From the NCBI RefSeq assembly GCF_003704095.1, contig NW_020846501.1, positions 434,001 to 498,000 of the forward strand: 64,000 nucleotides of DNA, in the 5' to 3' direction. Position numbers and translations under genes: made by a program. A model generated the notes under the pieces. The model did no database searches. It was given only the letters and a program-made list of their open reading frames with translations, and was not told the origin of the DNA. Origin of the DNA: Pocillopora damicornis (Eukaryota). Positions within the stretch are counted from its first letter, which is position 1. Each line of letters starts with the position of its first letter. Positions 1,001-64,000 of the stretch are shown here, in pieces.

Positions 1001-1123
1001 GTGACAAACTGGGTCCTTGGGTCAGGAGAGTCATATTTAGCCAATTCCAATGATATTGGAGACTCTGTTATCTCTTGCGAGATCCTTAGGAAAGAGCATG
1101 AGGAATTTGAGTTGTCTGCCAGG
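1001..1123 (+). CDS. Spectrin-repeat exon, module 1, 123 nt
   Basis: ttcag|GTGACA...AGG|gtaag; VTNWVLGSGESYL...HEEFELSAR. Confidence 0.85.
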
Positions 1124-4100
1124 GTAAGAGAGATAATTTTAATGTAACTTTCATCAATTTATCTTTTATCAAATCAAACCCACTTCAACCTAGCAATAAA
1201 ATAGATATTTCCATTAGTATCACATATTATATTTCCCCTACTTTTTCCTTCCATCTCTAAATTTAATGAGTTGGTAATTAGCATGGATAAGAAGAGGCTG
1301 ACTAATTATATAATAGATGTTTTTATTTTCTTAATAAGTATTAATCATTGACGTATTTATTTGGGTGGCTGACCCTCTCTCATAAGAACTGTGGATGCTG
1401 GAAGGGCGCCTGTCTTACTTGCTTGAGGGAGTGGGTCGTTAGTGGAAATCTCAAACCTCGGTCTTGACGTGTTGATCGAGCGATATCGAGGTCAATACGG
1501 CAAGGCTAAGATTTGAGAATTTCCCGCAATGACTAAGTCATTTACTGGAAATTATTATCCTTCAGTTTTTGATGCTCAAGGTTACCAGCAGAGAGCAAAA
1601 AACTCTCACCTTCCCATATTTACGGGCTAAAAATTACTTTCTTACCATGTCACGGACGGTTTTTCTCGACAAATCCTCGCGATCTTTTTCTTCGCAGATA
1701 AGAGCTTGTTTGTCTTCTTAATCTTTATTGATTCCTCCACTCCGCTTTTTTTGGTCACATTGTTCTCTGGAAACTTAATCTAAAACTTTAATGGAACTCA
1801 TACCCTCGTAGTGTCAGTCAGCCTTGATCGTTTTTATCTGCACGTATTTTCGGATAAAGGAAAAAAAAGGGCGCGGTTCTTGAATGACCTCAGTTATTCT
1901 TTATCGGCCGGTGGGTAGTCTGAGCTCTCAACCAATCAGAGGACGCGTCATTAAGTCGAAGCCCATATCATAAACAGTCGGCTTCGTTATTGTGGACACC
2001 CTCGGGAGGGGGGGGGGGGTAATAACGGGTACGAAAGAAAAAAAAATTATCTTTAAATATATGAAATAATATGTAACTACGTAAACGTTAAGTTTCGAAC
2101 GTGGCATCATGAACCAGGAAAAGATCCGGCCGCAAGCAGGAAATTCTCATGTTCGTGCCCAATTGAAAAATGGTTTCTTTATTTTCCTTTACCGTAATGT
2201 CGCTCTATATTACGCGAGTCAGGATTTTGGACAAAGTACTTAAGTGTCCACTATAACGAGAGAAAACACAAGTGAATGTCGTGCTGGGGTGGGGCATGAA
2301 AGTGTCCGCATTTCCGTAATAACGGCAGTTTGTTTCAGTCGTTAATTTATGCGTTTTGCCGGGGGTCTGACTTTTGTCCGCAATGCGGGGTGTCTGTAAT
2401 AGCGAGGTGTCTGCAGGAGCCAACTTTAGTAATCATAAATAATCATCAACTCTGTGGAATATTCTCTCTCATAGGAAGTGATAAACCACTTTGCTCAGGT
2501 GCGTGAACTTGCCAAGAAAATGCTCCAGGAAAATCACTATGCCTCCAGAGATATTAAAAGTCGCAAGGAATTCCTGGACAGAGGTTGTCGAAACTTTGCC
2601 CTGCGGATGAACAGGAGAAGAGACATCATACTGACATCACTTAAATTTCACAAGAGTGCAGGGGAGGTAAAGGGAGAGTTAAAAGCTTATATTTGTTTTA
2701 ATGGCAGATGATTTTCAAATCACCAATCATTGGAGTCTGGAGCTGCAATTCCTTTATATGATGTGATGAACTTTTTACTTGCTACTCAGTGACCTTTCTT
2801 CTTCGCTCAAAAAGTCAGCTTTGAAACTCTTAATAGTGGCTAATTTACGTTATCAACTCAGTTGATAAAACCAAATTACCTTGCTATAATCTCCCAACCA
2901 AACACCACAGTTCATTTATAAACTTAACCCCCTCTTTAATTTTTGAAACCTGCTTGTTAGTAACCATCGCAAAATGGAATAATAAACTTTCTGAATTTGC
3001 AACCAAGAAATTATTAATTTGTCATCTGTCCAGTTGATTGGCACATGTCTGTTTAGAACGCTCCACCTCCTAGTCTAACTTAATTTTGATTGGCCAGGTT
3101 CAGGGAAAAAAAACCAACAGGGGAACTGAGTGAGAAACTGGTCCAATTTAATCTTACGCTTCTTTAGAAGCCCAGCTGAGGTCATTTTCTGATCTTTATT
3201 TCAGTGCTCAGTTAATTTGGATGACTTATTTGAACTGCTGTGTTCTGATTCTGTTCTCATGTACGACTATGAGACTGCAGAGAGCATGCTCAGAACATTG
3301 GAAGAGAAGGCTGAGGGTGAGTGAAGTGTTTATGTCATTATAAATATTTCCCTAACGGGGTTCCTTCCTTTGGCCTTGTATTCCGTTGTATCACATGGTG
3401 TAATATTTTCCTTTTACACTCAGCGGTTGCCATTTCGTCTGAAGACACCTTGCGAGATGCATTGGCCGTGCAGGAACTGATGACAAGTCCAATGTCCAAT
3501 ATGCGGGGTGATGACGTCACTCAGGATTATGGGAAGGGTATTGCGCATGTGCGGCTTACTTTAGACGAACTAAGAGAGCGGAAACTACGCACGGATGAGT
3601 TGTGTGATGTGCGCAGAATCAAACTGCAGCAACTGTTGCAGCTCAAACAGAGCGAACGAGACGCTGAGCAGGTAAAGCAAAAGTCGACGAATGATACAGA
3701 AATAGCTTAGAAAATGTACGAATTGATTTTTATCGTCCCTATGGGCCTTACTATCCACTATCACAAATAAAGAAAGCGCGTCTTTCAAAGCGCTGTTCTG
3801 ATGAAGAGTAAAAATTTATGAAAGTCAGAGTGAAAGTATTGTTCATCAAATCACACGGCATACGGATATTTGAAATGGAAAAGAAACGTTTCTTACTAGT
3901 AAAGATAATCTGTTCTTTATCCACTTCCGAATTTCAGATTTTTCCTGTGAAAGCGAGAAGTAACGGAAGGTTTCAAAGACATTGAGAAAAAGGAATAAAT
4001 GCTTTTTTACTGAGGAGATTTCTTACATTTTTCATAATCAGGGATAATAGGACTACGTTTTCCTTCGGGGGTGGGGTTCGTTATCTGATAAGCATGAAGA

Positions 4101-7100
4101 ACAACTTATGTCTGAATTTGAATTAATCAGGCGACTGTGTGGATAAGTCAACTGCGTGACGCTACAGAACATAACTTGGGAGATGTGGGAAGAAACTCAG
4201 AGGATATCGAGGCTTTGCAACAGGAACACGAGAAACTTGAGACTACAGCTAAAGTAAGATGCCGCTTAAGATGAGTATCGTTGTAGTCCTTGAACGAGAC
4301 AGATATGAACGTACATCTCAAATAGGTTCTGCGGGTGGAAGCTTAAAGCATTGTTAAAACTTATTTGGGATTGACGTGTTTATGAAACATGGATTTTGTC
4401 AGACGATGACACAGTAAGTCACGTAAGTCAGTGAGTCACGTCTTCGTGAATGATAGTTGCGGTGAGCAGTCACTATCAAGATGTGAAGGGAACATCTTAA
4501 AGATTCTGAACAACAATTTCATCCGAACGAGAATATTAAGAGGATGATTTTGATCTTTTGCAGAGTACTTATGATTATGGTCGACAATTTCTCCAGGCCT
4601 CATTAGTTCTTCGCCGCACTTGTCGCTATGAATTGACTCCAAACTACCAAATGGAGGAAAGGTTAAACAGCGCTTGGAGTGAATTTTCATCGGCCATGGC
4701 TGAGCGAGGAGCAAGACTGTCTGTGGCGCTCATGTTTCATCGGAGCGCGGAGAAGGTAAAATAGCAGCAACTGACCATAGTCTTTAAGGAAGTAGTGCAA
4801 GTTTAATGCCGGGTTTAATTGCTGAATAGCAAATACATTCGACTTCTGTTGAAGCTTTAAGACCTAGCTGTTGTACCCGTTTCTCTCGACGTAAGGTACT
4901 GGCTGATAAGAATTGTGAGGAGTTACCGACACGTTAGCCAACTTTACCGTGAGAGGCCGAGGTTATATCTACAGTTCAACTTTTTTTATAATCATATACA
5001 GAATACCCTTTGGCCTCTACTTTGACAAACTTCAGAAACAATTTTTTACCTCACGTAGCTTGTCCAAGAAATTGAGGAGCACAGAGAGAGATACATGCGA
5101 GAGGACCTCCTAGAAGACCTCACAGCTGAATTAATCGAGGAAGAAATTCGCCGACACTCTGGCACAAGACAGGCCATCGACAAAGAATACGCTGATACGG
5201 TTGCCATGGGGCAAGCCTTGGTTGACAGAATGCAGTTACCTCCCCTGTTTGGGGAGAACGGTGCACCAAATCGGCCTCCTCATCTCATCGAGGAATCTCT
5301 GGCCGACTTAGAGGAGAGAAAAATGGCCTGGGAAAGAGTTTGGCTAGACAGGGACGAGCGCCTACGGCATTGGTTGAAACTCGGAGACTATGAGCAACAG
5401 ATGCGAGAGGTGAACCATGTGTGAATATAATAGTCTTAAACAGAAGGTTTGATCTGCAGTTCTAATTACTCTACTCCTTGTAATCTTAGTGATGCACTTT
5501 TAACAACTTGGTGACGCAGTAGCACTTTGAAAAGAACGTCTGTGTGGTTAGTCGTTTGCGACCAAAGTATAGCCTATGGGGTTAACTTCTCGCCTATCGT
5601 TTATCAGTTTTTGAAGGTGATAAAATCTCTCTTCTTTGTTACTTTAAAGCTTCTTCATTGGGTTAAAGATAGAACTAGCGAAACAGAAGAGAAAAAACAC
5701 GTGATTGGTGAAAACCTGACAGAGGCTGAAGCGCTTAGTGCAGACCTACAGGAACTGGAAGCAAGACTCAAGGTTTGTATCACATGATGCGTTTGTGTAG
5801 TGCGGATTGGTCGACATAATATATTCATGCTGTTTAATAGCGTTATGAAGGGAAGCAGCTTTTTTATTAAGGGAGAACAATTGTATGAAAGATGTGATTT
5901 AGAACATATCTGCCTTTGAATTTTCCGTTGTCTCGAAACGTCACAAAACATGCGAGATTCGAAAAACATTTAAGGTTAACCTCTTTAGAAAACACGTACT
6001 GAAGTCGAGACTGAATGGCTCTTGGAGGATGTATGTATCCGTGATGAAGTGTATGTCTATTCCAGTTAAAGAAACGTAAATAAAGAATCGATGTGTGGTT
6101 TTGTGTTATGGCCTAACGCGAAACAAAGCCCATTGGTCGTAACTTTTACCCGGACAACCGAATGCCAGTGGACTTTTTTTTTTTCTACGAATAAAGAAGG
6201 AATTAGTTCGGGGAAATAGACGTGGGAGAGTTCATTAGGCATCAGGTTCATGTTTGGTTCTGTGATTGTCTTTTAATGGCTAGATGCATGGCAGCTCGAA
6301 AATCTTCACAGAATTTCCGTTGAAAGGTTCTTTCAAACTCGTTGAGATTATGAGCAGTTTGTTCAGAAGTGCAAAGCTATTCCAAAACTTATGTTTGTTT
6401 TCTATTTAAGGATACATCTGAACTTAGGCTTATTTAAAAAAAAACAACAACAACAAAGTTGGGCTGGGAAGTGCTCTTGTTTGTCCAGAGCCTGCCCGGC
6501 GTTTTTTTTTAAACTTATCTGCGGAGCCACATTTGCATCTATCAAGGCTATTAGTTTTCAGCACCTGTGTAAAATGAGGACATGATGACTAAGAGCATTG
6601 CTTCCGACAAAGGTGACATTTCAACATAGACTTAAAAAATATGACTAGTATCGATAAGATTTTCGGAGTAACTTAGAGGGGAATGGTTTCACCACCGGCG
6701 GCAACGCTTCTGGTTTTTCGTGGGCTCGTCACTATAAACTTTCTTGTGTACACCAGAATACTGGGAGTAACCCCCATATTTGAAAATTTCCATACATACC
6801 ATACACTTCCAAGTGCACGGTCGAAGTTGCAAGGGAATGAGAAGAATGAGCTTGATATAAACAGTTTGTAAAGATGACGAATTTTAGAGCACAGATCCTT
6901 TGAATGTGAGAGCCGGAAGGTCATCCAAATTTCCGAGAAGTTAATGCTGTCTTTCCAGGAAAAACCTTCATCCCGCATAATAAGTTGTCAGAATTTGAAA
7001 CGCTACATTTTATGGAATTTGTATAGACTCGAACCGTTTTGTAATAAAAATTATCTTAAGTTATTAAGGGAGAATATTCACCATGTGATAAATTGTCTCC

Positions 7101-10100
7101 GTCACGCCATGATATCAAAGTGCGCCAGCTGCGTTTTCTTTCTTTCAGTGCAAATAGAAAAGTATATTAATTGACCTTTGTAAACACGAAGTTTACATAC
7201 AGTTATACTCGACGACGTGACATAGCTTGGACTACAAATCGTCTTTGCTCGTTCCTCGCTTTTCTGTTATGTTTTTATTTACCAGACATGTAATGTGACG
7301 CCTTTCGTTTTGACCGCAGCCAAGCGAGTTCTGATCAAATGCGCGTAAACATTAGCCTCAAGTATGAAAAGTATTTGTTCACTGGGGCGTGGAGAGCGCG
7401 ATGGAATGTGGCTGGTTTTAAGTGGGTTGGCATGTTTCGGCATTTTAAGTTTGCATAAGTAATCAGCCTTAACTGTCGACCTGAGCTTTTGGCTGAATAT
7501 TGCTGCATCAATTTAACTCACCATTGTTGGATTCTGAGTATCGAAATCCTGAGAGGAGGTAAGTTAATGAAAGCACTTTTAATAGTTATTTTCGTGGAAG
7601 CCATTCTCATCCTGGATAATGCCAAGGGAGAAGCCATTTTAGTGTCACGATTGCTCGTCCTGACTCACCTAAAGTGAAAAGTAACACATCCTTAAAGCTT
7701 CTGTTCATTCGATCAGGTGTTCTATCGCACTTAGTTTGGCGTTCGATCATTATTTTCTTTCCTTTTCGTGCTTTAAAGAGCTGGGAGCCTTAATAACTAT
7801 CATGCGTTTGAAAGATGGTGCGAATCCATGCTGGCAAAAGAGCAGTGAATCATTGTTATCGTGTATAAATACTAATTGTCAATTTGTATACAACCACAGA
7901 AACATTCAGGTCGATCACAATATCACAGAGTCCTGAGTTTATGTACTTGCCTGGCTTGGAAGATTCTTGTTTAGCGAGAACATTACTAAGATTTTTGGTT
8001 TGATCGAGGCTATGTCTGTGTAGGAATTACAGGTCACTGTTTACAAAATACACGGATTCTAAGAAGAAAAAGTATTTAAGGATTTCAGTCACAGATGCTA
8101 AACACGAAGGGCAGATTTCATCTTAAACTAAGTGAATTGTATATCTGGCTGTAGATCGATATGACGATAATCGATGAAATGGACGTTTCGTGTTAATTAT
8201 AACGCCAGAGGCAATGACGATAATGTAATTTCCTATGAACATGGTTGCGGGATGTGAAACCTTTCTAATTAACTCTTGAGATCGATCGAGCAAAACGAAA
8301 GGATTGTTTGTTAGATGTTAATGAACTCAAGGAGATGGAATTTAAGAGGCGAATCCATGTTAACTAATCACGATTTGGCGTTGAAGACTTGTTTTTTTCT
8401 TTGCGATAAAAAAATCATCTACGGGAAACATTCCTGAACAATTCAATTTCTTCATGATGCATGACATGACCGTCTGTTTGGTTCTTTTAGATTGTTTTGA
8501 TGAGATTAACCAAACCTCTTATGTCCTTACGTCAGTGTTTGTGCAAAAGTATCCCTCAGCATGTGCTAGATAGCTGAATTTTTTCTTCAAAGGATTTGAA
8601 GACTTTAGTTTGTGTGGCCCTCAATTCGTGTATAAATTTTGTATCGGATGTTTTGTATTTCGTGAAAGGGGCATACTGATTATAACCAAAACATTCTTAC
8701 CATATGCCTGAAATCTCTTCAAGAAATTTAGGGAACAATTCTGTTGTGGTAAACAAGGTCAAAAGGTTAAATAAAATATCACTGATTGTCTACAATACCC
8801 AATAAGCTTGAATTTGTATGAGGTATTTGTAACTGAAGAGGCTCTGGAGAGATTATGTTAAGGACTTTTACAATTAACCCCAAGATATGTTATGAATATT
8901 AAGTTACTTTGTCTTACCACGTGAAATACACCCTGCCCATTTTAGGGTTATTTGCAGCTTAGATGAAGGGCACCGTATCAATTTATTGGAAACTTCATAA
9001 ATAAATCAGTTATGAAAGCATATCCAGTTCAGATCACATCACTGTCTAAGTAGCACTTGAAATGCTTTTCTTTTTATTACCTTCAGATGTTTTTTGTTGG
9101 CCTCAATCACTGTATTGGTTACCTATTTTATCATCAATTTTTATGTATACCTCCTTTATACCATTAGTTTAGATATTAATTATGATTTGTGTATGGTATT
9201 TTCCTAAAATGTTTATTTTCAGGAGAAAGAGAGAGAAGTTTCTGAGCTCATTCAGATCATCAAGTCACTACATGTAGCCTCAACAGAAGATCAAGCTTCC
9301 AGACCCTATGGAAGGATGGCAGATTCTTTAGAAGAGGCCTGGAATGACCTCAATGTTCAATTAGAGGGAAGGAGAATACTTCTTGACACATCAGTGGCTT
9401 TTCATCACAGTGTAGAGAAGGTATGATGTAAATAGATGTGGATGACCTCCAATACAGCTGTATTGAGTTTGGGTGTGTGAATTAACTTGTCATGATTCTG
9501 AAACCTTCATTGATACTTGTCATATGTTACTCTTACTGTGTTAATATTTCCACAGGAGTTGAAGTTTTTTATTTTTTTCATAAATATTTGGTTTATGATC
9601 TTACAACACTGAACTCCATGTTGTCGCAATTTAGTAATACTGCTCTGCAAAGAGATACTCCTTTCACATTAACTGAAAAAACCTTCAGTTCATATCACAT
9701 TTGACTTTTTCCATCAACAAAGCAATAGGAAAAATTGTTATATTTTGGATTCCTCTATATTAGTAGGTAAAAAGCCTTAGAAAGGCCATCATTTTAGTTT
9801 TAACTCCCTCTTTTCACCCCTGACTTATATTCTGTATTTTGAGTGACATACTGCAAATGGAGGGGGGTGAAAGGTCACCGGTCATATGAAGTGGTAAATC
9901 TTTTGTAACTCTTACTGGAGAAGGCTTGTGTGCTCCAAAAGAGCATGTGCATCTGCCCTGAACTCTGCTGAGTGTTATTAGGAATTTTTGTAACTGTCAA
10001 GGTTGTTTGTAAGTTGACCTTCACTGTTTCATTAATTGCTTTTAGAATCATATTTGGCTGATTAGGATATCGGTAATTTAATGGAAAAGATCAAATTAAA

Positions 10101-41609: not shown

Positions 41610-41654
<45 letters not shown>

Positions 41655-53600: not shown

Positions 53601-56600
53601 TCATTCACACAACAATGTAAGTTGTTTTGTAGAACTCATTACTGTTATCCATCCGTGGTAGGTTTGTGGCAAAGTCTTCTGCAGAATTTTTCTGGATTTT
53701 TCTTGGTTATGTTAATTTTGTTTTTTTAATCGAAGTGTTTATGTCTTCTACAGGCAAGAAACCTGCACCCAGATTCACTCAACCGTTGGAAGAGACTCAA
53801 GCTACCATCGGAGGGACAGCGAGACTGAAATGTCGCCTAAATGCCACAGCCAAACCTAATATTGAATGGAAAAAGAATGGTCAACCTGTTAGTGAAAACC
53901 GACGGGTGAAAACAGAGTTGGAGGGTGAACTCATCTCACTGGTCATCTCGGACGCTAGGTTTGAAGATAGCGGAGAATACCAGTGTGTTGTTAAGAATAA
54001 GAGTGGAACTGCGTCTTGTAGTACGCGTCTTTTTGTGAGCGAATCGACGAGTAAACCAGAGTTCAAAAAAGTGATGAATGATCTGGAATTACTAGAAGGA
54101 GATGACGCCGTTTTTGAGATTGCAGTTAATGCCAAGCCCGACCCCAAGGTGCAATGGTTCTTGAGAAAAATGCCCATCAAGAGTGAAGGAAAGTACACCA
54201 TCGATGAAGACTCAGAGCGGCAGAGGTTTTCACTCACTATAAGCGATTGCCACACAGAGGACAGTGGTCAGTATCGGTGCCTTGTAACAAACAGCGCTGG
54301 TGAAGTCGCGAGTTCAGCTGAGCTCAAAGTCAGTGATAGACAAGTGGCACCCAGATTTATTCAAGGCACAGAGGAGCAGCTGTTTGAGGTTTGGGAAGGA
54401 GCTCCTGTCAAGCTTGTGGTGCAAGCCAGAGGGAAGCCCACCCCTCAAGTGGAATGGTTTAAGGAGAATCGCCTGGCTCGGAGAGTCAAGCGAGTTGAGC
54501 TGGAGACCGAAGATGACCAGAGCATTCTGTTGATTCCCAAGGCAGTCCCAGATGATTCAGGGAATTACCGAGTTGAAGCCACGAACTCCGCTGGAACAGC
54601 TGTCAAACCATTTGTTGTTAAAGTCAATGGTAGGCTTAAAATTCAAGTATTTGTCAAACATTACTTTAAAAAAAAAACACTAGAAAAGTCAAGATAAGTT
54701 ATTAGGGCTGTCAAATAATAAAACTTGGTAATTAGAGTATCATATTTTTAAAGAAAAATTGCCACAACTTAGCGGAGATTTTTTGATATGTGACACTGAG
54801 GTAAGGAATGTTCTTATAACAGCCTTCCATTAGTTGGATACTTTTTGCTCATAATTCCTTACACAGAAGCCAGACTCTAAGACAACAGAGGTTGAGTCTT
54901 TAAAGCGAATTAAATGAGTGTTATTCTGGTTCACAGCTCAAAAGCTTGTTCTTAGACGAGAACCAGTTCCTGCCGGAGCTGTAAAACCAGAATTCATTCA
55001 GCGACTTCAGGACGTTGAGATCGTTGAAGGGAGTGCTGCTAAGTTTGATGTCCGTGTCAAAGGTAAGATTAATTCTAATCCTCTATTGAATTTAGTCAGC
55101 CTTATTCCTTGAATATTTCCTGATATTGCGGCAACTGTAGTGCTTGTAATCTCAACAATTTGATCATTTCATTTTAAATAAGAAATAATACCAAAGGCGA
55201 TAATGTAACTGAACGCACACCACACAAAACAAAAAATAACTCAGTCACAGTTAAATGGGAGTGGGGGAATTAATTGGCCTTTGTTTTGGTTGTTATGATA
55301 TCTTGTCGATATTATGGTTTCCGTCTATTCAGGGACACCCGAGCCGGAGGTGGACTGGTACAAAGACAACCGTGTGATACGTGAAGGCGGTCGAATGAGA
55401 TTCTTGTTTGAAGACGACGGTTTGTGTTCACTGCTCATAAGAGAGGCTGAATCATCTGACCGAGGGCGTTACAAGTGCGTGGCGAGTAATCCAGCCGGCA
55501 AAGTTCAGTGCAGTGCAGAACTATTCATAGAGAGTAAGTATCTAATTTTCTTGTTAAACGCTGTCATTAACTTTGTTTTTTGTGATAGAAATCAAGCAAC
55601 ACGGTGTTTTTTTTGTTTGTTTGTTTGTTTTTTTGTAATGTTACCATAAGCTTGTTGTTTCACTAAAATTGTTACTTTCTCTTTCGTGCACAGGCCATGG
55701 TTTTGATTCTACCAGTGGCTCTGATCACGAGAGACGTCTTTCACGGTGAGTTACGATCACTCAATAAGCACACAGCAAATATTATTAAAAAGATTGTTCA
55801 GTTGGCAAATGAATCCTATGCTTCGCGAGGGAGACATACTTGTGTAATATATTTTTTAACATGAGCTTCCCATTTTGTTTCGAGAAAGGACATGTTTAAT
55901 CCAGGATTGAATATCTTACGACTTATATAAATTGTTTATTTTTTCTTTTGTCAGAGAGTCAACTTTTGATATGCTGTCGGACGACACAGAAGATGAAGTT
56001 GAATCATCCTCCTCAAGTGGTCCACCTAAGCTTCCTCCAGACATAACGCTTGTGTTACGCAACCGTGACGTGAAGGAGGGTGGCGTGACAAAGTTTGCTT
56101 GTCGAGTGGTTAGCAGTAGTAGCGTGACTGCTGAGTGGTACAAAGATGATCAGCTTGTCAATAAATGGCCCCGCTTCACTTGTGAACGTGATGAGGATCT
56201 TTATGCTTTGAACATCACAGACGCCAAGAGGACAGATGCAGGACACATTCGATTTGTGGCACGGAACGAGTTTGGTCAGGTTGAGAGCAATGCATACCTC
56301 AATGTTGAACGTGAGTAGCACCAATTTGGGAATTTTATGATAATTTGGTTCTAAAGGTCAACTCAAGGTGGTGGCACCTTATGCTCTTCGTTTGGTCATG
56401 GGCTGATAATTTTTTTTTTGACAATTTTATCGTTTGGTAATGAATTCGGTTAAGCGGTGTGTTCGTGTGGTGATCTGAGAATTTTTTGGCCCTATTTCAG
56501 CTGACATGGAACCTGAATTCGAAGGAAACACACCAAGGTTTATTCAGAAACTTAAAGATGTTGATGCAGTGCCCGGTAAAACGGCGAGACTGGAGTGCCG

Positions 56601-59600: not shown

Positions 59601-62600
59601 CGCCGAAACCTACTGACAAGAAAGTGGCGCCCCCACCTGCACCAAAACCAAAGCCTGCAGTTAAATCAGGTCAGGCAAGATGTAAACAATTATCCTTTAC
59701 TCCAACACCGACTCTTGGTCGAGGCGTTAAACGTGGATGCGTTTGAATATTTCGACTGATTTTTGTTTCGTTTCTTTACCCCTAGTTCCAAAACCGGTTT
59801 TCTCATCAGAGCTTCAAGACAAACAGGTTAAAGAAGGAGACAATCTGACGCTAGACGTTCGAGTACCACTCGAGTGCAAAGCCGAGGTCACGTGGTACAA
59901 AGACGACCACGCTCTGAAAGAGGACCATCATATTGCCATTATCTCCGCTGGAGAGATGCAAGCAGTTAACATCTTCGATGTGTCAGTCAAAGATGAGGCG
60001 GTCTACCGTTGTGTTGCCGCCAATGATGATGGATCAGTTTCTACTGATTGTGAAGTGCTTGTTGAAGGTATCCACTCTATTTTGTTAGCAGTATGAATTC
60101 ATAATAATGTGGCTATATATGTAACGTCATCAACGACAACACCTTTGTGCTATTACACTGGCGAATTGTTAGGATTTCCGGATTTCGGTGTAACAAATGG
60201 TTGACAAAAAGGGGGGAACTATACAATGGTTGAATTGAATTGTTTTTGCGTTAAGACTATCATTTTGTGCTTTTATTTTTACAGAGAAAGTCAAAGTTCC
60301 CCAAACAGTAATGAACCGCGGGTGAGTACATCGTGATTCTTGCTTGAAATGTGGTTTACACATAATTCTTAGATTGATCTTAAAATTCACATATCTGTGG
60401 AAAACATGTCCCCCTAATTTACGTCCTTATCGGTAAATTTTTTTCATGGTTCGTTTTGAAGTACACTCGCTCCATGAAATTAATTGAGCAAACTCGTTCC
60501 GACTGCCAACAGCAAAATCACTGATATTAGTTGATTAGGAGGATGACTGCAGTTGAATTTATTTTAACGAAGCAAGAATCCTGTAATTATTTTCGCCGTG
60601 AAAATGTTTGAACTCATCGTTCAGTGTCGAGCACACTTGGGATCTCTGTTTGCATTGGAAAAGATCTGAGTTCGATGTTAATTAATACTGTTCCTTTTTT
60701 TTTATTTCAATCTCAGTCGCCTTTCCCAAATGGCGCCCGAATTTGTTCAAGAATGTAGCGACCTGTGTGTGGTAAAGAATTCCACTGCACAACTAGAAAT
60801 AATAGCCGCTGGCAGCCAACCACTGCAGATTCGATGGTTTAAAGACAACGAGCCGATCAAGTATGGAAAGCGGTTGAAGTTGTCGTCTGATGGAGAACAT
60901 TGCTCGCTCAAGATTTCTCCTATTGAGATTCAGGATCAAGGAATTTACAAGTGTGTTATATCTAATAAGGCTGGAACCCAGTCCTGCGAGGCCAAGTTAA
61001 CAGTGGGAGGTTGGTAATGCTTTGCTGGAATGTACATGTTTTTCAAAATGTTTGTAAACCGGCAATGTACCCACATGATGCTTCACGCTTACTGATGGTT
61101 GTGTAGGTGATATTGTTTAAAGGAATGTTGTCGTGTGTTAGAAGATTATATAACTCTCGGGATGTTTCTTCAACATAACAATATTAATAAATTATTGCTC
61201 TTTTCTTTGTGTATAGAATCGGTAGACTTTAAAGAAAGTACCGATGGCACAGCCCCAGGTTCCCCAGTGGCAAAGCGGCCATCCAGGTCAAAGAGTGGTG
61301 CTAAACCGACTATTGTCTCTCCACTGGAGGATATTGAAGTTAATGATGGAGAAAATGTCACTTTAGAGGTATAATAACACATATCTTATTATTCGTGGAA
61401 TTTTATTAATAGGGCACATACTTAAATCTATTCTGAACAGCTGACAAGGAATAGTCGCTGAAATGGTAACAGGACGTATTCGAGCCTAATATGGAATTTG
61501 TTACATTTCCTTTTTTAGGTGACTTCCGGTCCTGAACCCATTGACAACATCGAGTGGTTCAAAGACAATGACCTCATCCGCTCTCAGCCTCGGTTCACTC
61601 AGTCATCAGCGGGCGAGCAACACACCTTGGACATTCAGTCAGTCACTGTCGATGACGAAGGAATTTATAAATGTGTGCTGCTCAATAGCTGGGGCATTGC
61701 TTCGTGTTCGGCTGAAGTCCTAGTGGAAGGTGAATGCCATCGAATTGCCTCAAGCATTGCAAAAGTAACCTTTTTTCGGTCGCAAGTTTGTTCCATCTGA
61801 AAGAAAATCTCCTTGATGGCAACTTGCAGAGTTATTCTTGTAACATTTTTCACGCTAATTGCCCCTTAATTTTGCCTCTGATTGTTGTTGTCCTTCTTTC
61901 ATATTAGAATCAATGTCAGAATCTTCATCCCAAGATGACGAACAACTTGAAAAGTTTAACGCCCGTATGGAACGTCGGAGATCACGTGACAGTGTCTGCG
62001 AGCCAGAATTCCAACAAGAGCTTAGCAACAGCGATGTCTTTGTTGGGGATACTGTATACTTTACTGTCAAGTCAAGGGGCATACCGGAACCGAAAGTCTC
62101 ATGGTACAGGAACGGAGAGCTCGTGAAGGAAGACTCTCGAGTGAAGTTTATCAAAGATTCGCAGAGTGGAAACTATTCCCTTCTTATCAACAAAGTGACC
62201 GTGGAGGACGAGGGCGAGTATCGTTGTGTGGCTTCCAACATGGGGGGATCTGTTGCCTGTCAAGCAAAACTTTTGGTTAAAGGTAAATGTCAAAGGGTAA
62301 TGTGCATGGTGCCAAATCATAGAATTTTGTTTTGGGGTTATGTGCCTCAAGTATTCCTCAAATGATAATTCGTTGAAGTTTATGATGACTTTGAAGAGAC
62401 ATTGTATTAAAATTGTCTTTTCAAAGACAAAATAAAGACGCTTCTGATGTTCGGTAGCACGTCGACATAACTCAGAATGAACAGACATGGAATAGCAAGT
62501 CCGATGTTTTTATTGAAATTTTTTATTATATCCAATGCAAACAAATGTCGTGTTAGTGAAAGAAACTGGACCAGACCTCCATTTAGTGACTGAATATTGC

Positions 62601-64000
62601 ATTTGCTTTCCCTCAGGGCATAATCAAGATGAAGCGCCTTCATTCACAGCGCCGCTGACCGATCGCTCTATCGAAGATAGCAGTGCAGCTAGGTTTGATG
62701 TGCGTGTGCGCGGAAAACCTGCTCCAACAGTCTCTTGGTATAAAGACGGAAAAGAGATCAGTGATGAACAGTTTCCACACATCAAAGTTTTGCAGGAGGA
62801 AGACTTGTTCTCTATTCTGATAACAGAAGGCAAGTTTGAAGATGCTGGAACGTATAAAGTGGTCGCCAAAAACGTTCTGGGAGAAGTGTCTTCTACTGGA
62901 ATGTTATTTGTTGAAGGTGTGTAAGGTAGATTGTGTAGTAACTAGGATTGTTTAAGATATATGAGAAGTAGGAGTACCTCAGAATTAGGCTGCGAATAGT
63001 ATTTGGAACTTTTTATTTCCGAGGAAATCATCTTTGCACCGCACAAAAACATGCAATTTTTCTTTTAAAAATTACCCGTACTTTCCAGACCACAATTTTA
63101 CAGTCTTGAGGAAACAACTGATACTAAGATGTGCAGCGCCATATAAATTTCAGCCCATTTCAGCACCTAAATTTGTTGATTATCTGAAAATTCTTTCTTT
63201 GAAGGGAAACTCTGCTCACTTTTTTATTCATACCCTTTAAGATTAAAGAAAGAGCTAATTCGTTTCCTTCATTTTAGGAGCCGATCAGCTGCCACCCTTT
63301 GCTGGAGGAAAACCTCCGCGTAAGAACTCAGGCCTCTCAAGAGTTGAAGAGGTGAGAGTTTGATTAACCCTTTACACTCAACGTCAATATGCATATTGCA
63401 TATGTATACCAGTATATGTTTATCAGTATATGTCTACCAGTATATGTACAACGGTATATGTATATCCGTATTTGTATATCAGTATATGTTTATCAGTATA
63501 TGTACATTGGTATATGTATATCAGTATACATATTCACAATTCTGTTATTTTTACATTCCTTTTCTTGGCACTAGCAAGGAGAAGGTGTTTAACAGTTGAT
63601 GATCAGTTACTTTATTCTCATGACCTTAATGTTTGATTCAGGGCCGAGACTGTGTGGAGAAATTAGATGCTAGTCACCTTAAGGGGTTAAAGGGAAGAAG
63701 GAGTCGATATTCATAGATTAGGGAATTTTGAGAGAAGTTATATACACATACTAAATATTAGGTCAATCAGTGTTTGGTCCATAATTCATCTTGAGAGAAG
63801 ATTTCATCTTCCCTAAAAAAAAAAATTATTTTAAGTCACTGAAGAGTTATAGAAAACTTTAGTGCATAAATCTTTGTGAAGATAATACTTGGTTATATCA
63901 TAGTTTTATTCCCTCACTTGCTTCCCAGGTTCTGACGCTCAAGCTGTACACAGCCATTGAGGACTTCTATTCGGAAGAGACTGGAAACAAATTTCTTAAG
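1001..64000 (+). CDS. Giant spectrin-repeat / DH / SH3 / poly-Ig protein gene (titin/obscurin/UNC-89/Trio-like), partial at both ends, ~80 exons, ~10,200 aa in window
   Basis: Continuous chain of GT-AG exons with compatible phases and no in-frame stops. Recognisable spectrin, DH, SH3 and I-set Ig motifs (PxF...W.KD...D.G.Y.C.A.N..G). Confidence 0.9.
1444..1973. mobile_element. Interspersed repeat (non-autonomous DNA transposon-like) with an internal imperfect hairpin
   Basis: Imperfect IR at 1444-1524; CpG-containing island inside a CpG-poor intron; resembles coral repeats from recall only. Confidence 0.45.
1974..2425. mobile_element. MITE-like element with GGACAC/GTGTCC subterminal repeats
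   Basis: Starts CAGTC...GTGGACACCC; several inverted GTGTCC(G/A)/GTGTCTG motifs toward the 3' end. Confidence 0.45.
2475..2666 (+). CDS. Spectrin-repeat exon, module 1, 192 nt
   Basis: atag|GAAGTG...GAG|gtaaa; EVINHFAQV...FHKSAGE. Confidence 0.85.
2804..2933 (+). mobile_element. Degenerate truncated copy of the same Penelope-like repeat
   Basis: cgctc.aaa.gtcagct...gtggctaatttacgtt.tcaac.cagttg...aaattacc matches 41870-41945. Confidence 0.65.
3205..3316 (+). CDS. Spectrin-repeat exon
   Basis: ttcag|TGC...G|gtgagt; CSVNLDDLFELLCS; ends in phase 1. Confidence 0.8.
3424..3671 (+). CDS. Spectrin-repeat exon
   Basis: ctcag|CG...CAG|gtaaag; ...KLQQLLQLKQSERDAEQ. Confidence 0.85.
4131..4253 (+). 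CDS. Spectrin-repeat exon, module 2, 123 nt
   Basis: atcag|GCG...AAA|gtaag; ATVWISQL...QQEHEKLETTAK. Confidence 0.85.
4564..4755 (+). CDS. Spectrin-repeat exon, module 2, 192 nt
   Basis: tgcag|AGT...AAG|gtaaa; STYDYGRQFL...FHRSAEK. Confidence 0.85.
5059..5409 (+). CDS. Spectrin-repeat exon, 351 nt
   Basis: cgtag|CTT...GAG|gtgaa; ...WERVWLDRDERL...YEQQMRE. Confidence 0.85.
5650..5772 (+). CDS. Spectrin-repeat exon, module 3, 123 nt
   Basis: taaag|CTT...AAG|gtttg; LLHWVKD...IGENLTEAEAL. Confidence 0.8.
7300..7564 (+). promoter_or_regulatory. Candidate internal promoter / non-coding alternative first exon
   Basis: Orphan consensus donor GAG|GTAAGT at 7558/7559 inside a CpG-retaining zone, upstream of a CpG-depleted domain. 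Confidence 0.35.
9223..9420 (+). CDS. Spectrin-repeat exon, 198 nt
   Basis: ttcag|GAG...AAG|gtatg; ...LEEAWNDLNVQLEGRRILLDTSVAFHHSVEK. Confidence 0.85.
11992..12345 (+). CDS. Spectrin-repeat exon, 354 nt
   Basis: gacag|TTT...AAG|gtatc; ...LDEQWKERKKVLEQC. Confidence 0.85.
12650..12769 (+). CDS. Spectrin-repeat exon, module 4, 120 nt
   Basis: aacag|ATC...AAG|gtaca; ITKWLNEEGEDY...EHYKFEEVAK. Confidence 0.85.
13115..13306 (+). CDS. Spectrin-repeat exon, 192 nt
   Basis: gtcag|GAA...AGA|gtaaa; ...LEDRRKLLTDTLSFY. Confidence 0.85.
13432..13686 (+). CDS. Spectrin-like exon, shortened, 255 nt
   Basis: ttaag|GCA...GAT|gtaag; open frame AHDKLDEIR...KEFED. Confidence 0.75.
13995..14117 (+). CDS. 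Spectrin-repeat exon, module 5, 123 nt
   Basis: cttag|CTC...CAG|gtcag; LFGWIRNVGEDFL...MGDSV. Confidence 0.85.
14625..14795 (+). CDS. Spectrin-repeat exon, 171 nt
   Basis: tgcag|GTT...CTG|gttgg; ...LWMRFSARLEYRLKLG. Confidence 0.75.
14890..15063 (+). CDS. Spectrin-repeat exon
   Basis: gatag|CTG...AAA|gtaagt. Confidence 0.8.
15142..15321 (+). CDS. Spectrin-repeat exon
   Basis: tgtag|GAA...GAG|gtaag; ...LGQLWNLREEQL...FEKDTRE. Confidence 0.85.
15772..15894 (+). CDS. Spectrin-repeat exon, module 6, 123 nt
   Basis: tttag|GTC...AGG|gtaag; VILWIKEQ. Confidence 0.8.
16239..16430 (+). CDS. Spectrin-repeat exon, 192 nt
   Basis: ctcag|CGT...AAA|gtaagt; ...LLSMSATFYTSVEK. Confidence 0.85.
17271..17597 (+). 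CDS. Spectrin-repeat exon, 327 nt
   Basis: ttcag|CTT...GCG|gtatg; LPRDINNAQLLLQDH...LCEFEQ. Confidence 0.85.
17720..17888 (-). mobile_element. tRNA-derived SINE-like fragment with an inverted segment
   Basis: Minus-strand B-box-like GGTTCAATTCC at ~17812-17822; 17749-17777 is inverted at ~17859-17887. Confidence 0.5.
18202..18324 (+). CDS. Spectrin-repeat exon, module 7, 123 nt
   Basis: atcag|GTC...AAG|gtagc. Confidence 0.8.
18583..18774 (+). CDS. Spectrin-repeat exon, 192 nt
   Basis: tacag|CCA...CAG|gtttg; ...MEARWQRFLSRMEDHRAMLEASIEFH. Confidence 0.85.
18991..19314 (+). CDS. Last spectrin-like exon, 324 nt
   Basis: aatag|GCA...AAG|gtaca. Confidence 0.85.
19616..20448 (+). CDS. Long E/T/V/P/K-rich disordered linker exon
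   Basis: tccag|GCA...CC|gtaagt; lies within a 287-aa ORF; ends in phase 2. Confidence 0.8.
20558..20915 (+). CDS. Linker plus start of DH (RhoGEF) domain
   Basis: cacag|A...GAG|gtaac; RRMNAITDRLIESESNYVDDL resembles DH CR1. Confidence 0.85.
21023..21120 (+). CDS. DH domain exon
   Basis: ttcag|GAT...GT|gtatgt; KDTIFINSEDIFFFHK (compare IFGNIxxIYxFH). Confidence 0.85.
21351..21420 (+). CDS. DH domain exon
   Basis: gttag|G...AGG|gtaag; IFCDELAKC...VGKVF. Confidence 0.85.
21535..21624 (+). CDS. DH domain exon
   Basis: cccag|GAA...AAG|gtagc; YITFCDGK...FFK. Confidence 0.85.
21741..21881 (+). CDS. DH domain exon, CR3
   Basis: tacag|AAA...GAG|gtatg; LLDRPVERVLEYKAFLSDLL. Confidence 0.85.
22013..22065 (+). 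CDS. DH domain final helix
   Basis: ttcag|GCT...AA|gtaagt; AGKEVIDRLCAEIRQKT; ends in phase 2. Confidence 0.8.
22253..22503 (+). CDS. SH3 domain exon, atypical
   Basis: tctag|G...G|gtaatt; IALDDY...LRKGETVVVL...LVPATVL. Confidence 0.85.
22713..22762 (+). CDS. Linker micro-exon
   Basis: Strong pyrimidine tract, cacag|AA...GAG|gtagg; phase 1 to 0. Confidence 0.65.
23145..23214 (+). CDS. Linker micro-exon
   Basis: aaaag|GTT...G|gtctg; phase 0 to 1 restores the frame; VSEIFVPATEREVVEVALVEVAS. Confidence 0.55.
23626..23910 (+). CDS. First I-set Ig exon
   Basis: APVFTMPLEN...WLKND...DGGVYTCRAKNVAG; T|gtaag. Confidence 0.9.
24049..24204. repeat. Perfect 62-bp inverted repeat with a 32-nt loop (hairpin/MITE-like insertion)
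   Basis: 24049-24110 is the exact reverse complement of 24143-24204. Confidence 0.9.
24411..24471 (+). CDS. Acidic linker micro-exon
   Basis: tacag|CT...AT|gtaag; phase 1 to 2 is required by the next exon. Confidence 0.75.
25006..29399 (+). CDS. Giant 4394-nt exon encoding 14 I-set Ig domains
   Basis: 1467-aa ORF; tacag|A...G|gtaag; 14 PxF...W...DxGxYxC units. Confidence 0.95.
30383..32428 (+). CDS. Exon encoding 6 Ig domains (A,B,C,C,C,C types)
   Basis: 697-aa ORF; catag|CC...G|gtagc. Confidence 0.93.
33044..33922 (+). CDS. 3-Ig super-repeat exon
   Basis: cacag|GT...G|gtaat; phase 1-1. Confidence 0.9.
34322..35224 (+). CDS. 3-Ig super-repeat exon
   Basis: tgaag|GG...G|gttag; phase 1-1. 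Confidence 0.88.
35567..35866 (+). CDS. Single Ig exon
   Basis: aacag|CA...G|gtttg. Confidence 0.88.
36390..36589 (+). CDS. PEVK-like linker exon
   Basis: tgtag|GA...CAG|gtatc; rich in P/E/V/K/S; phase 1 to 0. Confidence 0.8.
36923..37304 (+). CDS. Linker plus Ig exon
   Basis: tgtag|CTT...G|gtaat. Confidence 0.88.
37329..37447. mobile_element. Short palindromic MITE remnant
   Basis: GGATAACGCTA...TAGCGTTATC inverted pair; internal TATCCgttGGATA palindrome; AACAACTGGG end. Confidence 0.4.
37731..38039 (+). CDS. Single Ig exon
   Basis: tacag|AA...G|gtttg. Confidence 0.88.
38297..38321 (+). CDS. 25-nt micro-exon
   Basis: ttcag|AA...AT|gtaagt; phase 1 to 2 is needed to join 38503. Confidence 0.75.
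38503..38786 (+). CDS. Single Ig exon
   Basis: atcag|A...G|gtact. Confidence 0.88.
38875..38916 (+). CDS. 42-nt symmetric micro-exon
   Basis: tgcag|AA...G|gtatg; phase 1-1. Confidence 0.6.
39341..39963 (+). CDS. Super-repeat Ig A+B exon
   Basis: ctcag|AA...GAG|gtagg. Confidence 0.88.
40346..40598 (+). CDS. Super-repeat Ig C exon
   Basis: gccag|GTG...G|gtaac. Confidence 0.88.
40947..41342 (+). CDS. Single B-type Ig exon
   Basis: ctcag|GA...G|gtaca. Confidence 0.88.
41593..41955. mobile_element. Penelope-like element terminal-repeat insertion, inverted arrangement
   Basis: 91-bp inverted repeat 41656-41746 / 41861-41951 with 2 mismatches; 22-bp IR 41595-41616 / 41831-41852; internal CGATCTAA(T/G) tandem array; flanking CTATGAAC direct repeat. 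Confidence 0.7.
41723..41756 (-). ncRNA. Minimal type I hammerhead ribozyme motif (Penelope/retrozyme-type)
   Basis: Minus strand reads GCU-CUGACGA-A-GGGC-UAAC-GCUC-GAAA-C-GUC-AGC. Core boxes intact; stem I GCU/AGC; stem II GGGC/GCUC; GUC cleavage triplet. Confidence 0.7.
42029..42910 (+). CDS. 3-Ig super-repeat exon, 882 nt
   Basis: catag|CT...G|gttcg. Confidence 0.9.
43318..44202 (+). CDS. 3-Ig super-repeat exon, 885 nt
   Basis: tttag|CC...G|gtaag. Confidence 0.9.
44707..45606 (+). CDS. 3-Ig super-repeat exon, 900 nt
   Basis: cgcag|AA...G|gtatt. Confidence 0.9.
46034..46915 (+). CDS. 3-Ig super-repeat exon, 882 nt
   Basis: aatag|CC...G|gtatg. Confidence 0.9.
46889..47213 (+). repeat. 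~161-bp tandem duplication spanning an exon/intron junction
   Basis: 46889-47049 is repeated, diverged, at 47050-47213, including GTACGAG|GTAT. Confidence 0.85.
47222..47260. repeat. (GTTAACATGC)x4 tandem repeat
   Basis: Directly visible. Confidence 0.85.
47362..48081 (+). CDS. Truncated super-repeat exon (Ig A+B; C lost)
   Basis: gacag|CC...G|gtagt; 720 nt; phase 1-1. Confidence 0.82.
48583..49134 (+). CDS. Super-repeat exon, 5' part
   Basis: tgtag|CT...G|gtaag; ends inside Ig B. Confidence 0.88.
49412..49741 (+). CDS. Super-repeat exon, 3' part
   Basis: cccag|GT...G|gtagg; 552+330 = 882 nt. Confidence 0.88.
50383..51267 (+). CDS. 3-Ig super-repeat exon, 885 nt
   Basis: ctcag|CT...G|gtaag. 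Confidence 0.9.
51405..51579. other. Assembly gap (175 N) preceded by poly-G
   Basis: N run in the sequence. Confidence 0.99.
51580..52443 (+). CDS. 3-Ig super-repeat exon; 5' end lies in the assembly gap
   Basis: Open frame PQVTQPLK...FNITVE G|gttag. Confidence 0.88.
52670..53554 (+). CDS. 3-Ig super-repeat exon, 885 nt
   Basis: actag|CC...G|gtaagt. Confidence 0.9.
53754..54629 (+). CDS. 3-Ig super-repeat exon, 876 nt, basic variant
   Basis: tacag|GC...G|gtagg. Confidence 0.9.
54937..55062 (+). CDS. Ig exon, N-terminal half
   Basis: cacag|CT...G|gtaag. Confidence 0.85.
55333..55533 (+). CDS. Ig exon, C-terminal half
   Basis: ttcag|GG...A|gtaagt. Confidence 0.85.
55694..55745 (+). CDS. 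Linker micro-exon (…ERRLSR)
   Basis: cacag|GC...CG|gtgag; phase 1 to 2. Confidence 0.75.
55955..56310 (+). CDS. Acidic linker plus Ig exon
   Basis: gtcag|A...C|gtgagt. Confidence 0.87.
56501..56806 (+). CDS. Single Ig exon
   Basis: ttcag|CT...C|gtaag. Confidence 0.88.
56970..57024 (+). CDS. Acidic micro-exon
   Basis: cacag|AA...AA|gtatgt; TDDEESESAGEQELEEE. Confidence 0.75.
57191..57621 (+). CDS. PEVK-like linker plus Ig exon
   Basis: tgtag|A...G|gttgg. Confidence 0.87.
57834..58145 (+). CDS. Single Ig exon
   Basis: tttag|CA...G|gtgtg. Confidence 0.87.
58456..58492 (+). CDS. Linker micro-exon
   Basis: tacag|CT...CT|gtaagt; phase 1 to 2. Confidence 0.75.
58596..58969 (+). CDS. Linker plus Ig exon
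   Basis: ttcag|T...G|gttag. Confidence 0.87.
59252..59330 (+). CDS. Glu-rich micro-exon
   Basis: cacag|GC...AA|gtaag; LEESTGDESEETSEDELQSKEELPI. Confidence 0.75.
59596..59669 (+). CDS. Pro/Lys-rich (PPAK-like) micro-exon
   Basis: tctag|G...G|gtcag; EAPKPTDKKVAPPPAPKPKPAVKS. Confidence 0.75.
59786..60067 (+). CDS. Single Ig exon
   Basis: cctag|TT...G|gtatc. Confidence 0.87.
60285..60321 (+). CDS. Linker micro-exon
   Basis: tacag|AG...GG|gtgagt; phase 1 to 2. Confidence 0.75.
60717..61009 (+). CDS. Single Ig exon
   Basis: ctcag|T...G|gttgg. Confidence 0.87.
61217..61368 (+). CDS. Linker plus Ig N-terminal half
   Basis: tatag|AA...GAG|gtata. Confidence 0.82.
61519..61729 (+). CDS. Ig C-terminal half
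   Basis: tttag|GTG...G|gtgaa. Confidence 0.85.
61908..62282 (+). CDS. Linker plus Ig exon
   Basis: attag|AA...G|gtaaa. Confidence 0.87.
62617..62916 (+). CDS. Single Ig exon (about the 75th Ig)
   Basis: ctcag|GG...G|gtgtg. Confidence 0.87.
63278..63351 (+). CDS. Linker micro-exon
   Basis: tttag|GA...GAG|gtgag; phase 1 to 0. Confidence 0.75.
63400..63525. repeat. 14-bp minisatellite (ATATGTATATCAGT) x9
   Basis: Directly visible degenerate tandem units. Confidence 0.85.
63929..64000 (+). CDS. Start of a probable second SH3 domain exon; runs off the window
   Basis: cccag|GTT; only phase 0 is open: VLTLKLYTAIEDFYSEETGNKFLK (compare SH3 Y.AL.DY). Confidence 0.7.

Follow-up and report, generated by a model that had tools for sequence, protein, structure and literature searches.

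Connectitin is a giant gene described by Hanashima et al. (2025, J Mol Evol 93:306; PMC12198301) in Acropora millepora, Nematostella vectensis, Hydra and Aurelia. In the available sections of that paper, connectitin combines a SEC14 domain, more than 10 spectrin repeats, numerous Ig domains, RhoGEF/PH/SH3 modules and C-terminal kinases, of which jellyfish and hydra have two, while coral and sea anemone have three (PMC12198301). The same sections treat it as homologous to SESTD1-CCDC141-titin and as a paralogue of TRIO/KALRN that predates both cnidarians and placozoans (PMC12198301). They describe its orthologues as single genes and report that cnidarians carry both connectitin and a separate Trio/Kalirin gene (PMC12198301). 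A report of cnidarian obscurin/UNC-89 orthologues dates from 2012, and a 2017 review lists such orthologues in Hydra, Clytia and Nematostella, with broad, not muscle-specific, expression and no clear titin (PMC5253434).

Here we analyze a giant gene that runs through a 64,000-nt stretch of the Pocillopora damicornis genome (hereafter the window). It can be set against four described systems. Relative to the connectitin of the available text, it carries a PH-less DH-SH3 between rod and Ig array that is absent from that text, and four kinase-like domains downstream versus the three given there for corals; the species set of that text is without the coral studied here (PMC12198301). Its likeness to obscurin and UNC-89 lies in a long I-set array, a Trio-subfamily SH3-DH-PH triplet and an Ig-Ig pair followed by at least two CaMK-type kinases. 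The obscurin/UNC-89 combination of SH3-DH-PH, tandem Ig domains and two kinases is found here, and obscurin/UNC-89-like giants are among the best database matches of the coral Ig-kinase exon. Obscurin, however, is without a Sec14 or spectrin head and without a second DH, and has FN3 and IQ modules, while UNC-89 has its SH3-DH-PH at the N-terminus; at the coral locus, both Sec14 and a spectrin head are present, and 204 kb contain no FN3.

Trio, Kalirin and UNC-73 resemble the coral gene in having Sec14, a spectrin rod and two GEF modules, each with an SH3, followed by Ig and kinase, and the Sec14, DH and SH3 of the coral gene are closest to Trio and Kalirin structures. Whereas in Trio and Kalirin each DH is followed by a PH and there are one Ig (joined by FN3 in Kalirin) and one kinase, the coral gene has an SH3 straight after its first DH, 75 Ig domains between the GEF modules, and three or four kinases. 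With titin (connectin) it shares an elastic-type giant Ig chain, three-Ig exons that recall the titin super-repeats, and an MLCK/titin-like Ig-kinase with an autoinhibitory tail; CCDC141 and insect Sallimus/Zormin show the same pairing of spectrin repeats with Ig domains. Unlike titin, it has no Ig-FN3 super-repeats, no long PEVK spring (its linkers measure ~66 aa) and no Z-repeats, it carries several kinases rather than one, and it forms a single gene where titin, SESTD1 and CCDC141 are three neighboring genes.

Materials and Methods

The window corresponds to C3136:434001-498000 (+ strand) in a 234-Mb assembly of 4,393 contigs. Flanks of 60 kb upstream and 80 kb downstream were examined with it, and all positions are window coordinates, negative numbers lying upstream. 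Exon ends were derived from RNA, from strict exon chaining and from comparison of sister exons. Strict chaining yielded 97 exons, among them 10 of the 12 defined by RNA; short spectrin exons escaped it and a few Ig exon ends were misplaced, and both faults were corrected by hand from sister exons. A looser version of the chaining returned 571 exons and was discarded as over-predicted. Domain searches were done exon by exon, and the joined sequence was used for stop and length counts only. RNA evidence consisted of RNA-seq contigs from four independent studies, mapped on 19100-25099; the runs are labeled coral or marine metagenome. The local Ig HMM was seeded from one domain, and the local FN3 HMM was built from 30 FN3 exons of the same genome.

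Results

Spectrin rod and first GEF module

Table 1. Features of the coral locus, in window coordinates.
Feature	Position	Strand	Evidence
Rod module	1001-1123, 2475-2666, ~3424-3671	+	Exon classes, splice-site scoring
Rod module	4131-4253, 4564-4755, 5059-5418	+	Exon classes, splice-site scoring
Rod module	5650-5772, 9223-9420, 11992-12345	+	Exon classes, splice-site scoring
Rod module	12650-12769, 13115-13306, 13432-13686	+	Exon classes, splice-site scoring
Fifth rod module, atypical	around 14004-15063	+	Exon classes, splice-site scoring
Rod module	15772-15894, 16239-16430, 17271-17597	+	Exon classes, splice-site scoring
Rod module	18202-18324, 18583-18774, 18991-19314	+	Exon classes, splice-site scoring
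Linker exon, rod to DH, 833 nt (~278 aa), E/T/V/K/P-rich	19616-20448	+	RNA junctions 19312>19614, 20448>20558
DH (RhoGEF) exons, Trio subfamily	20558-20915, 21023-21120, 21351-21420, 21535-21624, 21741-21881, 22013-22065	+	RNA junctions in three to four runs
SH3 exon adjoining DH	22253-22503	+	RNA junctions; weak SH3_KALRN and SH3_2 matches
50-nt micro-exon	22713-22762	+	GT-AG joints 22500>22710, 22760>23143, four runs
70-nt micro-exon	23145-23214	+	GT-AG joints 22760>23143, 23211>23623, four runs
Ig array	23626-62916	+	Pfam I-set, local HMM, stop-free GT-AG chain, RNA junctions up to 25006
First Ig exon	23626-23910	+	RNA junctions
61-nt exon	24411-24471	+	RNA junctions
4.4-kb exon, 15 Ig	25006-29399	+	RNA contig extends ~4.3 kb inside
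2-kb exon, 6 Ig	30383-32428	+	Pfam I-set, local HMM
200-nt exon, 66-aa P/E/V/K-rich non-Ig linker within array	36390-36589	+	Predicted exon chain, translation
Phase-1 cassette exons, 876-900 nt, three Ig each; some units with an extra intron	42029-54629	+	Exon chain, sister-exon comparison
Assembly gap (N), in phase-1 intron	51405-51579		Sequence, sister-exon alignment
Predicted 74-nt linker exon, last Ig to second SH3	63278-63351	+	Exon chain, in frame, canonical splice sites
Second SH3 exon, cut by window end	63929-64051 (63929-64000 inside window)	+	SH3_2 E 4.4e-5, above cut-off
Kinase K1	75760-77490	+	Kinase-like domain pieces
Ig plus kinase K2	83190-84670	+	One exon, Pkinase 2e-74
Kinase K3	88095-90180	+	Split kinase
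Kinase K4	96299-98402	+	Split kinase

The rod (1001-19314, + strand) is built from seven recurring modules of 123-, 192- and ~324-360-nt exons, all in phase 0 (Table 1). Three of its large exons match the Pfam families Spectrin_SESTD1, DUF7799/Spectrin_7 and Spectrin; five more exons gave weaker spectrin-type matches in the same profile register, bringing the total to eight. Because the 192-nt exon corresponds to positions 56-104 of the Spectrin profile and the ~350-nt exon to most of one repeat, each module would hold two repeats. This predicts about 14 spectrin-type repeats in the window, most of which are recognized by internal periodicity and not by significant family matches. An additional rod-type exon lies upstream of the window (-508..-142). 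Between the rod and the first DH stands the 833-nt linker exon, for which Pfam returned no family.

The first DH begins near 20836 in an RNA-defined chain (20836-22065) with exons of 53-141 nt. One of these exons matches RhoGEF positions 116-166 in Pfam (E 2.6e-4), and the same exon, compared with the PDB at E values up to 1, retrieved only the DH domains of Trio, Kalirin and ARHGEF25. The signal of the SH3 that follows is weak (SH3_KALRN, E 0.049; Kalirin SH3 structure 1WFW, E 0.17). Among the RNA-defined exons, there is no PH exon between this DH and its SH3, which are separated by an intron of just 187 nt. Pfam searches with single DH, Sec14 and SH3 exon pieces mostly found nothing at E<0.01; these domains are divided among exons of 50-140 nt.

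Immunoglobulin array

The array comprises 75 I-set Ig domains on the + strand, spread over ~40 exons. Two counts lead to this number. Pfam detected 74 I-set domains across open frames and one more at 62517-62921 (3, 41, 20, 10 and 1 in successive stretches); between 23592 and 62921, no + frame of at least 90 aa is without them. The local Ig HMM gave 76 matches between 23643 and 62891, all on the + strand and none on the minus strand; since one domain, split by an intron, accounts for two of these and another match is partial, they also correspond to 75 Ig domains. The three-Ig cassette units share a DNA identity of only 54-62%, so the duplications that gave rise to them are old. The Ig HMM found no match in the 66-aa linker exon inside the array, which has the look of a miniature PEVK-like segment.

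FN3 domains were searched for in three ways. No Pfam scan of the locus returned an FN3 match, the local FN3 HMM gave nothing below E 0.1 in 204 kb, and the contig that carries the gene is absent from the genome's 150 best FN3 matches. The first-pass annotation of this DNA, made from the letters and their open reading frames, had described at least 14 spectrin-like repeats, a DH with an SH3, about 75 Ig domains, a second SH3 and no visible FN3; all of these descriptions agree with the searches, with the reservations that the first SH3 signal is weak and that the second SH3 is truncated by the window end.

Flanking domains and identity of the gene

For each of three colinear ORF pieces at -2797..-889 (0.9-2.8 kb upstream of the window), the best match was 7UR2, a structure of the Kalirin Sec14. 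The matches cover residues 51-90, 99-122 and 123-151 of that structure with E values of 0.51, 3e-4 and 0.018, each weak alone, and 7UR2 was the only match for one of the three pieces. Neither Pfam nor a whole-genome CRAL_TRIO_2 scan matched these ORFs. The best CRAL_TRIO_2 match of the genome, on contig C55, bears no similarity to them and represents an unrelated BCH-like domain.

At the other end, the last Ig (62916) appears to be joined to an SH3-DH-PH-kinase part, a connection predicted from the phase-consistent chain alone. The second SH3 and the SH3 of P0003, an obscurin-like protein, are colinear. Beyond the second SH3 lie a third one, pieces of a DH, a PH of NGEF type (2.5e-10) and an exon that resembles SH3; two of the downstream SH3 domains score above the cut-off, and the pieces of this second DH and the SH3 are colinear with the obscurin-like protein. 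The SH3-DH-PH-SH3 segment is followed by two Ig domains and a split kinase, then by a single exon with an Ig and a complete Pkinase domain (2e-74), and finally by two more split kinases. Downstream of the window there are thus three further Ig domains (at 70736, 74374 and 83216) and, within 35 kb and on the + strand, four kinase-like domains (K1-K4), of which K3 and K4 look like tandem duplicates. When the Ig-kinase exon was compared with representative proteins, bilaterian titin, obscurin and MLCK giants dominated the matches; the two coral matches, 70% identical, are ORF-level calls rather than gene models. The full locus would extend roughly from -5,000 to +98,000 and encode roughly 13,000 aa.

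Of the features listed for connectitin, four are represented here: an N-terminal SEC14 in the three upstream pieces; more than 10 spectrin repeats after it, in seven two-repeat modules and at least one upstream exon; numerous Ig domains, 75 in the window and three downstream; and RhoGEF, PH and SH3 domains, with the first DH and SH3 in the window and two or three SH3, the second DH pieces and the NGEF-type PH downstream. For the C-terminal kinases, the four kinase-like domains downstream are candidates. The separate Trio/Kalirin gene, too, has a candidate in this genome, at C2278:334111-354762 (+ strand), where two NGEF-type PH domains 12.6 kb apart are followed by Ig and FN3. By its predicted domain order, the gene studied here is very probably orthologous to cnidarian connectitin, a gene formerly named the obscurin/UNC-89 orthologue of cnidarians, and an ancient paralogue of Trio/Kalirin. 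This assignment is one by domain architecture.

Could the gene instead be the coral's canonical Trio/Kalirin orthologue, enlarged by a lineage-specific Ig expansion? Its Sec14, DH and SH3 do have Trio or Kalirin as their nearest solved structures, and its domain order parallels that of Trio (Sec14-spectrin-GEF1-SH3-GEF2-SH3-Ig-kinase). The C2278 locus, however, has on one strand the layout expected of Trio/Kalirin and is probably the canonical orthologue, and several kinases lie at the locus studied here, among them an Ig-kinase of MLCK/titin type that has a regulatory tail. Given also that the available text of Hanashima et al. places both genes in cnidarians (PMC12198301), we consider this reading unlikely and prefer that of a distinct connectitin orthologue.

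Splicing of the spectrin, GEF and Ig exons into one unit

RNA-seq contigs revealed 13 GT-AG junctions between 19312 and 25006, each in three or four runs: 19312>19614, 20448>20558, 20913>21021, 21120>21351, 21419>21534, 21622>21739, 21879>22011, 22065>22253, 22500>22710, 22760>23143, 23211>23623, 23910>24411 and 24471>25006. Single contigs bridge 19100-20913, from the last spectrin exon through the linker to the first DH exon. Other single contigs bridge 20558-25099, covering the DH exons, the SH3, the two micro-exons and the first Ig exon and reaching into the 4.4-kb Ig exon. RNA contigs also reach ~1.2 kb further 5' of 19100-19312. Since the spectrin, linker, DH, SH3 and Ig exons are spliced together in RNA, they belong to one transcription unit. 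Rod, DH, SH3 and Ig array form one spliced polyadenylated unit; the contigs are assembled from short reads and are not proof of one full-length molecule.

Three joints of the first-pass exon model fall within this region. Those at 19314/19616 and 24471/25006 recur exactly in the RNA contigs. A direct junction 22503>23626 does not, as the exons 22713-22762 and 23145-23214 intervene; with 120 nt in total, the two micro-exons leave the frame as it was in the model that omitted them. That model had also raised the question of whether the spectrin and Ig parts are separate genes, which the contigs answer by splicing both into one unit.

A reading along the latter lines supposes two adjacent genes, a Trio/MCF2-like GEF (Sec14-spectrin-DH-SH3) and an obscurin-like Ig-GEF-kinase, linked by read-through or by chimeric contigs. 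Internal promoters are indeed used by giant genes of this family, and a Dbl-like protein might naturally end in DH-SH3; moreover, two tiny exons sit in the intron past the SH3, and there are repeats in later introns. Yet the in-frame GT-AG joints 22500>22710>23143>23623>24411>25006 were found in four independent studies, and single contigs run from the DH exons to the 4.4-kb Ig exon. The RNA-defined chain has neither a stop codon nor a terminal exon, and the orthologues in the available text of Hanashima et al. are single genes (PMC12198301). A pair of genes is therefore very unlikely, and the data favor a single connectitin-type gene. Hardly credible is a hemicentin- or Dscam-like adhesion protein, secreted or membrane-bound, whose Ig repeats gene prediction had wrongly fused to cytoplasmic modules. 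Extracellular proteins also have long I-set arrays and secreted acidic proteins adjoin the locus upstream, but RNA splices the Ig exons to the DH and SH3 exons with the frame kept, and neither a signal peptide nor a transmembrane segment, EGF or FN3 is present; cytoplasmic SH3, DH-PH and kinase modules come next on the same strand.

The chain was also followed by frame and splice sites. Its RNA-defined part (exon 18991-19314, the 12 exons after it and 25006-29431) adds up to 7,110 nt with no stop. From 18991 to 51267, the chain comprises 19,744 nt with no stop and GT-AG introns only, and from 51582 to 64051 another 6,699 nt with no stop and canonical introns only. The coding length in the window is ~10,100 aa, including ~1,300 aa of rod, close to the ~10,200 aa that had been read at first pass as one phase-consistent chain, and stops are absent on either side of the N gap.

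The gap itself falls between two Ig exons. Upstream of it, exon 50383-51267 (885 nt) closes with a canonical donor and one base left over, and the N stretch begins beyond 137 nt of intron and a run of poly-G. Right after the N run, an open frame sets in whose alignment to the neighboring 876-900-nt three-Ig exons starts near their residue 8, which suggests that the acceptor and ~8 codons of the next three-Ig exon lie inside the gap. That exon ends at 52443 in a phase that fits the next exon. The frames on either side of the gap are thus compatible in phase; continuity across it is putative, as is its length. Near-identical repeats collapsed into the gap were considered as an alternative and are unlikely, given that identity among the three-Ig exons is just 54-62% and that the gap has poly-G at its edge.

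Discussion

The gene is of a kind already known. The first-pass annotation had presented it as a cnidarian titin/obscurin counterpart uniting Trio/Kalirin-like with obscurin/titin-like parts, a view that RNA splicing, the flanking domains and the published connectitin all support. Its observation was accurate and its interpretation right in substance; the novelty that it implied does not hold, as an identical architecture appears in the available text on connectitin (PMC12198301). Between the two origins that it allowed, ancestral or convergent, the former is favored, since the available text places connectitin as a TRIO/KALRN paralogue and a homologue of SESTD1-CCDC141-titin.

We propose that the gene encodes a giant cytoplasmic scaffold whose N-terminal and central part lies in the window. 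Its order from the 5' end would be a Kalirin-type Sec14, ~15 spectrin repeats, a Trio-type DH without PH, and an SH3; then 75 I-set Ig domains with short P/E/V/K-rich linkers, followed by SH3-SH3-DH-PH-SH3; and, toward the 3' end, Ig-Ig-kinase, Ig-kinase with a calmodulin-type regulatory tail, and one or two more kinases. Judging from the families concerned, the Sec14 and spectrin head could anchor the protein to the membrane or cortical cytoskeleton, and the tandem Ig chain (~75 x 4-5 nm, >300 nm folded) might work along actomyosin as a tether or ruler able to stretch. Through the RhoGEF modules and the CaMK-type kinases, position or strain may be converted into signaling by Rho GTPases and phosphorylation, in line with proposals for titin kinase and obscurin/UNC-89. 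To be set against these putative roles is the broad expression reported in other cnidarians (PMC5253434). Shorter isoforms would probably arise from internal promoters and skipping of cassette exons, as in KALRN, OBSCN and TTN.

The position of the two GEF modules invites a more specific scenario, which we put forward tentatively and with less than even confidence. A Trio GEF1-like remnant (DH minus PH, plus SH3) would stand before the Ig array and a complete SH3-DH-PH behind it, an arrangement that would have the spring of ~75 Ig domains arise by Ig expansion in a Trio-like ancestor, in the interval that separates its two GEF modules; tandem duplication of the last kinase may also have given the lineage a fourth one. 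If true, this would be a more exact model of how titin/obscurin-type giants originated than the available published text offers. The PH-less DH-SH3 ahead of the array and the fourth kinase are possibly small additions to a known gene type.

More broadly, the gene bears on the question of a single pre-bilaterian origin for titin, obscurin and the striated-muscle machinery, an argument already made, in the available text of Hanashima et al., from the same architecture in other cnidarians (PMC12198301). To that argument, our analysis adds an independent transcript-contig check (19100-25099) that the spectrin, GEF and Ig parts form one unit in a reef coral, together with an exon map of two-repeat spectrin modules and three-Ig phase-1 cassettes. 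A further result is the correct annotation of a gene that is prone to being split up by automated pipelines.

Neighboring genes and repeats

Upstream of the locus, + strand ORFs of 778, 417, 801 and 281 aa (-24114 to -6503) have signal-peptide-like starts and long Asp/Glu runs, and Pfam returned no family for them. They look like secreted, acidic and disordered proteins in tandem, possibly of the skeletal-matrix type. The next gene downstream, seen as + strand ORF pieces at ~104158-106308, resembles by eye a PIG-A-type glycosyltransferase. The intron at 23911-24410 contains a palindromic repeat of ~160-200 nt (24046-24208) that matches itself on both strands. A first look found at least 666 candidates for this repeat genome-wide, its RNA-contig depth exceeds 1000, and its matches to Rfam miRNA families are sub-threshold only; it looks like a MITE-like hairpin element. 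Elsewhere in the genome, contig C3127 carries dozens of strong FN3 exon matches at ~15-190 kb, suggesting another giant FN3-repeat gene or a cluster.
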